Source: Saccostrea cucullata
Lineage: Eukaryota
NCBI RefSeq assembly: GCF_032062105.1
Contig: NW_026938805.1
Span: 310,001-374,000 of the forward strand
Length of the DNA: 64,000 nucleotides
Reading direction: 5' to 3'
Positions within the stretch are counted from its first letter, which is position 1, and each line of letters opens with the position of its first letter. The position numbers and the translations under genes are program-made. Below, one piece after another: positions 16,701-19,700 of this stretch. Below the pieces are notes generated by a model, which worked only from the letters and a program-made list of their open reading frames with translations, searched no databases and was not told the origin of the DNA.

Positions 16701-19700
16701 AATGCAAGATAACCAGCATGAACACGGCTTGCCATTCTAGGTCGATACCTGTGACAATAAAGCAATCATGTGTAACGAATGCAAAGAGTATATCTTGGTG
16801 TTGATGTATCGTAGATAATGATATCAAAAATGGCGTATGCCTATTTACAAGTCTTGTTCAGCTTTAAGATAATTTTCTGTCAATGTAATCATGAGTTGAC
16901 TAGCTGAGTCACCTGGAATGTTTTCAGTGGACAATATGTTGGGGAAGGAAGGTCAAGGAGTGTACATATTAATGTCGGGGTTGGACATTGAAAGGACTCT
17001 GGGTTCAGCAGGCCCTGTGGGGTGAGCCTCATTTTCTATTTATAGATAGAGCCTGTACATATCCAGAAGGTAGGGTGTACATACTCAGATATTACTGTTT
17101 TATTAGTCATTTCTGGTTCAGTGGAGAACAAACTAGGTGCAGAAAACAAGAAAACAAAAGGTGTCTACATTATAATGTCTGGTTTGGATATTGAACTATT
17201 CTGTTTAGGAATGTGGACAGGCTTTTGCATACGTCCATAAATATAGAATGAGCTATTATGGCAACAGGGCATATTGGGTGAGGATTCAACAACAGGAGAA
17301 TATTTATCTCTGCTAGCTATCTTATTTGCTTGAATTTTAGAAAGATTCCTGTAGATTTCTGTAATAAAGCAATTCAAAGAACCTAGACGAAAAAAGAAAT
17401 GTCTGAAAATGATGATATGAAAAAGAAATGAGAAAAATAATTTCCCTTTTGCTGCTTATGATTTTTTACTTCATTTGTAAGAAATTTGAAATATTTAGGG
17501 TATTAATTACCTCAGTTTATCTAGAACCGTCTCCATTTCTAACTGTACCACCAAAAAAACACAGTCACTCGACAAGAAAACACTGGTCCTTCATCTCATC
17601 ATGGGCAACTTATAACTGACACTCCTTTCCTTTATCTTGTGCACTGAGATCATTCCCTGATACTGGCTCATAACTGATTCTTAGACAGTTTGAGTGTGAT
17701 AAAAATAAAAAATAAAAACAACACTTTGACAAATTTATTGACAAATTTTTTAAAGAAAATACATTTGTTATGCAAAGTTATTATCATTTTTTACTGGATA
17801 TACATGTGGCATATGCTTGATAAATTTCCACATTTATTTCAAACAAGTTGACATTTTTTTTGGGGGGGGGGTGGGGGAGGAGGGTTATAATTTGTCTGTG
17901 TATAACAATCATTATCAAATATTTTTCCAAGCATCTAGAAAGAAAAGGATGCAGACAGCAGTATATGTTTTAACACAAAAATCACTAATTTTAGAGCCAA
18001 TGTAGCAAGGATTTTTATTAAATTTGCAGTGCCCAATATCTTTATATTATCCTTACAGAAAATCATATTTAATTTCCAAAATTATTCATGCTGTCACAAA
18101 CTTTGATCCTGTTTGAGAATTGGTTATTAGCCAGTAGAACTAGTTATATCCTTCTGCTTTCCTTCTTAAGCTGAGAATATGTTGGGAGAAAAGAATAAAG
18201 GAGTGTATGTCCTGATGAGTGGCCTGGATATAGAGCGATTAGTTTTAGCTGCAGGACCAGTCGGGTAGGTACACAGACTTACAAAATCCTTAGTGGAAAG
18301 AAAAGTGGGGGTAAATGTGAATTGAAAACTGTCATAGGTCAGGTCAGATTTGAACACCGAATTCCTAAAGGAGGTAAACAAGTAAGCAATCATCACTAAA
18401 ACAATATACATGTACAAGTAATTGCAATTGAAAAAAAAATTACACATTACATATATATAATTACTGAATTTTCTACTTTTTAAAGGCCCAGCATGAAATT
18501 GTTGGAGCCTTACAGGAATCACATTGTCTATCTGTGTACATCCATCTCTGTCTGTCTATCTTTAACTTTTCACATTTTTACTTCTTCTCAAGAACCACAA
18601 GGGCTAATTTTAACCAAAGGAGGCACAAAACATTCTTTGGTAAATAAGATTCTAAATTATATTTTCATATAAAGGGCCTAACCTCTTTCTATGGGGAAAT
18701 AATCGAGAAAAGGTCAAAGTAGGGTAGTGTTATTTGAAAAAACTCATCTCTAGAAACATGAGACTGAAAATGGCTTGTACTTGAAATTGTTCAATTTAAC
18801 CTCCTAAGTGTAGGATGAGGCCACCATGTTTAAATTTTTTGAGAGAGTTTTGTAAAAAAAATTCTCAAAAAACACACAGAACCACTCATTTGCAAACATT
18901 TCCTACTTGTATGGATTATTTTTATGTGTTTGTGAACACCGATGCCCCTGAAGGGCAGCTTATGGCAAGGGTTGAAGTTTCTCAAATGCAAGTCAAACTA
19001 TAAGGTCAAGGTCAGAAGGTCAAAATTGTTGGTATCCAAAGTAAGGTCTTGTAACAAGGAATATACCAGTGAAATATGAAAGCCTCAGTTCTAAGTGGCC
19101 AAGGTTTAAAGTTTTTGAAAATTGGGTCAAACTTGAAGATCAAGGTCAAACATAAAAAAAATTATTTATACCCATTGAAAGGTCTTTTCATCATGAACAC
19201 ACTTGTGAAGTATGAAAGCCCAGCACGAACTATTCAAAAGTGATAGTCAAGGTTAAAGTTTGATAATTTTTTGTAAAAGTGGGTCAAACTCCAAGGTGAA
19301 GGTGTCAAATCTGGTGGTATCCAAAGAAAGGGCTTATCACAATGAATACACCAGTGAAATATGAAACCCAAAGCCCACCCACTCAAAAGTTATGGGTCAT
19401 TATAAATTTTTTGCAGACGGAAAGACAGATGGACAGGGCAAAAACTACATGTTGATTATGGGAGCATAATAAGCATGTTCTTTTACAATTAAATCAGAAG
19501 TGGTTTATTCTTGTAATAATTTTAAGATAAATTTCAGGATAATGCAAGCATGCTGTGATGTTGCTTTTGCATACGCTCACCAAAGAGAAGCTTTTGGGGA
19601 GAAGATTGGAAAATTTCAGGTAAATACTGAGTAATTCATCATTTAAATACTGTAAATCACTTTTTATTCACGAGAACTTTATTTTCGCATAATTACGCAA

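Follow-up and report, generated by a model that had tools for sequence, protein, structure and literature searches.

Tandem alternative copies of the active-site exon in an oyster isovaleryl-CoA dehydrogenase gene, and a candidate second enzyme made by exon choice

The gene for isovaleryl-CoA dehydrogenase (IVD) of the oyster Saccostrea cucullata was analysed within a stretch of 64,000 nucleotides (contig NW_026938805.1, positions 310,001 to 374,000 of the forward strand, assembly GCF_032062105.1), here called the window, which is free of N runs. The gene carries two intact versions of its eighth coding exon, 8A and 8B, and the remains of a third, 8C. Its exons match the two RefSeq proteins of this species, XP_062589764.1 (isoform X1, P0094) and XP_062589765.1 (isoform X2, P0197), essentially exactly; X1 is the 8B isoform and X2 the 8A isoform. 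IVD is a single-copy gene and the sole IVD in the assembly. The locus is composed as follows.

13780-21323, forward strand: IVD gene from ATG to stop, 12 coding exon positions (tblastn of P0094 and P0197 on the window)
16087-16182, forward strand: exon 7, constitutive, 5' of the cassette (RNA joints 6>7 and 7>8B)
16895-16927, forward strand: 3' splice region of 8A, with a putative TGAC branch point ~30 nt upstream of the exon, then invariant GGAATGTTTTCAG, and a poor pyrimidine tract (alignment of four oyster loci)
16928-17021, forward strand: exon 8A, the alternative version (ER-TLGSAGP), with Gly in the place of human mature residue 258; this Gly is residue 284 of P0197
17123-17277, forward strand: pseudo-exon 8C, a decayed third copy of 155 nt
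18171-18264, forward strand: exon 8B, canonical copy, ER-LVLAAGP, Leu258 (joined to exons 7 and 9 in RNA contigs)
19538-19619, forward strand: exon 9, constitutive, 3' of the cassette (RNA joints)

Exons 8A and 8B are each 94 nt long, flanked by AG and GT and in identical phase, as the initial annotation had described, and 20 of their 30 residues are identical. When the genome was searched with the exon peptides, these two copies were found and nothing further; given that IVD is single-copy, their homology is well above chance level. The seven synonymous codon differences previously listed in the shared core are all present, and the proportion of synonymous differences between the copies (0.98) is saturated. 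Both peptides align with residues 235-263 of mature human IVD, which places the catalytic Glu at 254 and Gly or Leu at 258, so that the earlier reading of 8A as a copy that keeps Glu254 and replaces Leu258 by Gly is borne out. An assembly artefact and a separate paralog were both ruled out: many independent samples show this arrangement, and the gene has a single copy.

Reading frames were tested on exon joins made in script, and full-length comparisons used the database proteins P0094 and P0197. The joins 7-8A-9 and 7-8B-9 leave the frame open. Skipping from exon 7 to 9, double inclusion (7-8A-8B-9) and read-through of the 8A donor, which reads GGG TGA, each give an immediate stop. Because zero or two copies lead to a premature stop, each productive mRNA carries exactly one exon 8 copy, confirming that inclusion of both or neither breaks the frame. 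No double-inclusion or double-skip joint was seen among the contig joints listed, in a type of data where contigs drop rare forms. Nonsense-mediated decay (NMD) would remove zero-copy and two-copy mRNAs, and exclusivity may be enforced mainly by frame loss and NMD, aided by the weak 8A acceptor. A very short spacing would also help exclusivity between 8A and 8C; the intron between them measures 56 nt in M. gigas-type loci, 87 nt in L007 and 101 nt in the window. RNA pairing between 8A and the 8B acceptor was rejected as the exclusion mechanism, as duplex energies did not exceed those of shuffled controls in the window, Tubulanus or the bryozoans. Pairing of 8C with the 8B acceptor is good in M. 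gigas only. An inverted repeat has one arm just 5' of the 8B acceptor in both oysters compared (17661-17688 and 18109-18136 in the window; L208:1478-1553 and 1792-1867), and the two repeats are unrelated in sequence.

The account of two exon copies holds, with the addition of the decayed 8C, which it did not mention. In the window 8C retains its AG and GT and carries insertions of ~9 nt and ~52 nt as well as stops; if spliced, it would give an immediate stop. Other oysters (loci of M. gigas and of C. virginica-like and Ostrea-like type) have intact versions, in which position 258 is Ala or Val, and RefSeq lists an 8C isoform, X3, for Ostrea edulis. Some individuals have damaged versions, by donor mutations (L212, L217) or frameshifts (P0043, P0044). 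The third copy, with Val or Ala at 258, is thus repeatedly born and lost. In a C. virginica-like locus an extra fragment resembling the 3' end and donor of 8A lies between 8A and 8C (L216:459-488).

Transcript evidence was obtained from four Logan contig sets mapped to positions 15700-20400 of the window. These differ by ~5% in coding exons and hence come from a related oyster; inclusion levels cannot be read from contig depth, and rare forms are dropped. The joints 7>8B and 8B>9, both predicted earlier, were recovered in contig sets X1, X2 and X5 at contig depths of ~25-62. Contigs covering 8A have depths of 3-6 only, and 8B appears to be the major form. The predicted 7>8A joint is probably present too: in record 11 of contig set X2, 27 unaligned letters plus a shared CAG make up the 30-letter overlap expected for it, and it is not among the listed joints. 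The predicted 8A>9 joint is missing from the listed rows. An M. gigas contig (L223, SRR11939890) runs intron-less and in frame through 7-8A-9-10-11-12, at 98-100% identity to the genomic exons, and is direct evidence of productive 8A splicing. RefSeq contains an 8A isoform X2 for six oysters (S. cucullata, S. echinata, O. edulis, C. virginica, M. gigas and M. angulata). Exon 8A together with ~97 nt of the following intron differs at 0/194, 3/234 and 5/256 letters in the related-oyster contigs, versus ~5% in coding exons 6 and 10. The intron part directly 3' of 8A (17022-17118), nearly unchanged among these contigs, is possibly a splicing element. High-copy repeats lie in the introns at 18560-18600, 18950-19450 and 19647-19860, with contig depths of hundreds to thousands.

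Among four oyster loci the dN/dS of 8A is 0.04-0.22 (Fisher p 3e-6 and 1e-3) and a 17-residue stretch of its peptide is invariant, a pattern of substitutions indicating purifying selection. Copies of the exon were then compared across animals; the Logan, ENA and JGI loci are assigned to species either by record label or by the identity of their peptides to named proteins. A homolog search with short ORFs and a search by region, both subject to length limits and clustering at 90%, returned unspliced genomic ORFs only. A Gly258 exon lies 5' of a Leu258 exon in the bryozoan-type loci L004, L006 and L036. For L004 and L006 the canonical exons fall together with Watersipora (98/94), and L006 is labelled with a Bugula neritina mitochondrial accession. 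The same order is found in L048, probably another bivalve, in which the canonical exon clusters with the mussel Sinanodonta (99/91). A protein model of the sea slug Plakobranchus ocellatus (P0067), a gastropod, contains both copies, with the Gly258 exon before the Leu258 exon, and the nemertean (ribbon worm) Tubulanus polymorphus has three copies, with Val, Gly and Leu at 258 (L222), the Gly258 exon again lying 5' of the Leu258 exon. Further arrays with Ala or Val at 258 are present in the animal loci L219 and L221. A single exon 8 was found in a coral-like locus (L060) and in rotifer-like loci (L022, L029, L044). Glu254, Arg255 and the CoA-binding M, S, G, L and D are invariant in the Gly258 exons of three phyla, save one divergent gastropod copy. 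In a 32-column exon tree, 11 of 12 Gly258 exons fall on one side with a support of 71/92. At this weak support, a single lophotrochozoan origin of the Gly258 exon is no more than likely. The idea of an old duplication under purifying selection therefore stands, and the duplication is older and wider than had been supposed, with oysters, bryozoans, a nemertean and a gastropod involved. Two further arrangements were observed. In the bryozoan-type locus L004 (4670-6900) a tandem IVD paralog with only a canonical exon 8 lies directly 5' of the two-exon gene, and in a 2.1-kb contig of another animal an Ala258 exon (RAIATSG, L220:1414-1507) is the only copy seen before exon 9.

The consequence of the exon choice was followed on the proteins and on structure models. 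Isoforms X1 and X2 (420 residues) differ at 11 positions. Both AlphaFold models are confident, with a predicted local distance difference test (pLDDT) score of 89.6 for X1 (8B) and 88.3 for X2 (8A). The oyster enzyme resembles human IVD (PDB 1IVH, 8SGR; PMC12369846) in overall sequence (69% identity), in the position of the catalytic Glu in the same helix and in its G406/A407 branch pocket. Modelling of the isoforms, already suggested by the initial annotation, indicates that 8A keeps the IVD fold: the AF2 model superimposes on human IVD with a template modelling (TM) score of 0.98 and a root mean square deviation of 0.9 A. The 8B isoform has the Glu254 base, the Leu95/Leu258 floor and the Gly374-Ala375 branch space, and its best structural match is IVD. 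Unlike human IVD, the 8A isoform carries Gly (Gly284 in P0197) in place of the floor residue L290 (mature 258), together with neighbouring changes on the helix and the preceding loop. Among 16 positions that were mapped from human IVD and that serve catalysis, bind CoA or FAD or line the pocket, this is the only one changed, and it lies within four consecutive replaced helix residues (LVLA in 8B, TLGS in 8A). In human IVD, L127 and L290 constitute a barrier at the pocket's bottom that excludes chains of C7 or longer, and G406/A407 provide the space for the branch (PMC12369846). G406 and A407 are encoded in a shared exon and are common to both isoforms. Because the L290 floor is lost while G406/A407 stay, the simplest prediction from the models is a deeper pocket with the beta-branch preference kept. 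The initial annotation had proposed a larger or differently branched substrate. Since G406 and A407 lie in the shared exon, 'longer' is better supported than 'differently branched'; a switch of specificity as such is plausible.

A bacterial parallel is offered by AtuD of Pseudomonas (PMC4847356), an acyl-CoA dehydrogenase (ACAD) for beta-methyl-branched acyl-CoA that has Glu-Arg at the same helix position as 8A and, at the fourth residue beyond this Glu, a small amino acid, mostly Gly. AtuD candidates were collected with a DNA pattern built from AtuD sequence. It retrieved Pseudomonas ACADs encoded between a short-chain dehydrogenase, a carboxyltransferase, a crotonase and a biotin carboxylase, which is the atuBCDEF order (PMC4847356). 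No NCBIfam model identified these ACADs as AtuD; by gene context they presumably are. In a pairwise alignment, ERTLGSA of 8A stands opposite ERLFGAA of the ACAD in an atuBCDEF-like operon. Because the pattern forced Gly, an unbiased sample of AtuD-like proteins was drawn by protein search from 300 genomes of the phylum. At the site four after the Glu, the 30 proteins recovered have Gly (21), Ala (6) or Cys (3), and never a large residue. The two nearest solved relatives carry Leu or Ile there. In the top 120 IVD homologs, position 258 is Leu in 117 and Ile in 1, and the three exceptions are alternative exons. Unlike the oyster protein, which is an IVD, AtuD belongs to an LCAD-like branch (that of long-chain acyl-CoA dehydrogenase) and is the product of a separate bacterial operon gene; the oyster IVD is neither an AtuD ortholog nor placed in an atu gene cluster. 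The likeness of 8A to AtuD would at best be convergence.

The carboxylases of the oyster assembly were inspected as well. A second, divergent gene resembling the beta subunit of methylcrotonyl-CoA carboxylase (MCC) was found (G000:C968:99700-103300, L225) beside the canonical one on C19117, and is a candidate partner for a longer-chain route. An expansion of geranyl-CoA carboxylase (GCC) was rejected: ~14 PF01039 loci lack an AtuC match, and the one that was read out (L224) has a domain of the acetyl-CoA carboxylase type. These ~14 loci share the same carboxyltransferase exon layout, on G000 contigs C12588, C19202, C10390, C9041, C5838, C16261, C20870, C11660, C23511, C12274, C17907, C1160 (two) and C11921, and may be a real expansion or an assembly effect.

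Taken together, exon 8 encodes the helix that bears Glu254 as the catalytic base, Arg255 for CoA binding and Leu258 at the pocket floor, and would have been duplicated in tandem in lophotrochozoans. Choice of 8B would give an ordinary isovaleryl-CoA dehydrogenase; choice of 8A gives, by sequence and model, a folded IVD with an opened pocket floor. The latter would most likely take longer acyl-CoAs with a beta-methyl branch, either of citronellyl type or derived from phytol, in the manner of bacterial AtuD. We give a probability of about 0.5 to the reading that 8A yields such a deeper-pocket enzyme. Beta-methyl-branched acids are degraded by an Atu-like route in bacteria, and the accepted route in animals is peroxisomal alpha-oxidation. 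The broader proposal, that a splice-encoded second IVD has been kept since before the split of molluscs, bryozoans and nemerteans as an animal citronellyl- or isoprenoid-acyl-CoA dehydrogenase opening a mitochondrial Atu-like route, is put forward only tentatively and is rather doubtful. As to diet, algal isoprenoid acids might be degraded by a route of IVD, carboxylase, hydratase and lyase.

Several observations weigh against the deeper-pocket reading. The other floor residue, human L127, is common to both isoforms, and the catalytic helix of the 8A model has a one-residue break at 285 which the 8B model lacks. AtuD is 34% identical to the oyster protein, versus 69% for human IVD. No AtuC ortholog was recognised in the oyster assembly, and, of MCC and GCC, the additional carboxylase beta gene is nearer to MCC. 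On the RNA side, no 8A>9 joint is among the listed rows of the four related-oyster runs, and the low-depth 8A contigs of contig sets X1, X2 and X4 continue past the donor as far as 17118-17163. Support for the exon tree is weak (71/92), and Tubulanus falls outside the Gly group. Finally, two 8A alleles of M. gigas-type sequences are probably damaging, S275L, which corresponds in position to human S281, and G276R; because such alleles occur, 8A may be useful but not essential.

Other explanations have to be considered. A different change of specificity or direction is the strongest of them, if still unlikely: 8A might act on longer straight chains, like medium-chain acyl-CoA dehydrogenase (MCAD), on sulfur acyl-CoAs derived from algal dimethylsulfoniopropionate (DMSP), or as an enoyl-CoA reductase in anaerobic branched-acid fermentation, a hypoxia switch comparable to coq-2e. 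Replacement of Leu258 by Gly would also admit longer straight chains. Stress-linked exon switches in mitochondrial enzymes have precedents in coq-2 (PMC7434440) and the oyster alternative oxidase AOX (PMC5589949), and helminths make 2-methyl acids by reverse flux linked to electron transfer flavoprotein (ETF) (PMC8659336). However, G406 and A407, which favour a beta branch, are common to both isoforms, and the Gly258 exon is carried by bryozoans and by a nemertean, neither of whose phyla is among the listed producers of rhodoquinone (PMC7434440). With the exon present in phyla that are not known to make this quinone, the initial annotation's explanation by hypoxia or intertidal life finds no support in this comparison.

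It is improbable that 8A provides a subunit of low activity, or a regulatory one, by which leucine catabolism is adjusted within mixed tetramers. The change from LVLA to TLGS, the helix break in the model and the apparently minor share of 8A in RNA contigs would fit such a role, but a dead subunit would not need the invariant Glu254, Arg255 and CoA-binding residues of the Gly258 exons. More improbable still is a use of 8A mainly in unproductive splicing, where donor read-through or double inclusion leads to a stop and lowers IVD output and the protein matters little. The contigs that pass the donor into GGG TGA, and the low variability of 8A and the next ~97 nt compared with coding exons 6 and 10, agree with this. 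The dN of 8A, however, is far below its dS, its peptide is conserved across phyla at saturated synonymous sites, and an in-frame spliced transcript exists in M. gigas. That the copies are near-equivalent duplicates, or that Gly258 arose several times without shared function, is just as improbable: the third copy turns over freely, the order of copies differs between oysters and Tubulanus and the tree does not prove one origin, yet Leu is present in 117 of 118 canonical exons while three phyla have Gly fixed in one of the alternative copies.

Beyond the IVD gene, open reading frame fragments in the window resemble by eye myosin (95-1700, reverse strand), a methyltransferase (24090-24490, reverse), an oligopeptidase A-like protein (29600-46600, reverse), a DEAD-box helicase (50000-52550, reverse) and PHF5A (56297-56599, forward).

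Remodelling of an enzyme core by mutually exclusive exons is already known, and both IVD isoforms are already in the annotation. The closest case is coq-2, whose exons 6a and 6e occur in nematodes, flatworms, annelids and molluscs and whose substrate switch was shown experimentally (PMC7434440). In both genes, internal exons of equal role, mutually exclusive in coq-2 and apparently so in IVD, remodel the active-site core of a mitochondrial enzyme, and one copy is canonical while the other is lineage-restricted with fixed residue changes near the substrate. The enzymes differ, however, and the switch is inferred for IVD; the IVD cassette can also comprise as many as three copies, and its range takes in bryozoans and a nemertean. 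The duplicated exon 10 of C. virginica AOX (PMC5589949) is likewise a tandem exon duplication in an oyster mitochondrial enzyme, with a derived and normally minor upstream copy. In AOX the exon is terminal and its induction by stress was demonstrated, whereas the IVD exon is internal, frame-locked and common to several phyla. In line with the initial annotation, which knew of no such splicing in IVD, a literature search, mostly outside subscription journals, found no paper describing alternative or mutually exclusive IVD exons. The conservation of the Gly258 exon across phyla and the AtuD parallel appear not to have been noted before.

If the deeper-pocket reading is true, IVD would be the second well-defined case, after coq-2, of one invertebrate mitochondrial gene that gives two enzymes by an active-site exon swap. 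With 11 of 420 residues and 1 of 16 checked active-site residues different, isoforms X1 and X2 form a clean natural experiment, which makes the role of Leu258 in the chain-length control of acyl-CoA dehydrogenases directly testable. The pair may also uncover a route, so far not described, by which farmed oysters and other lophotrochozoans process branched lipids from their diet.
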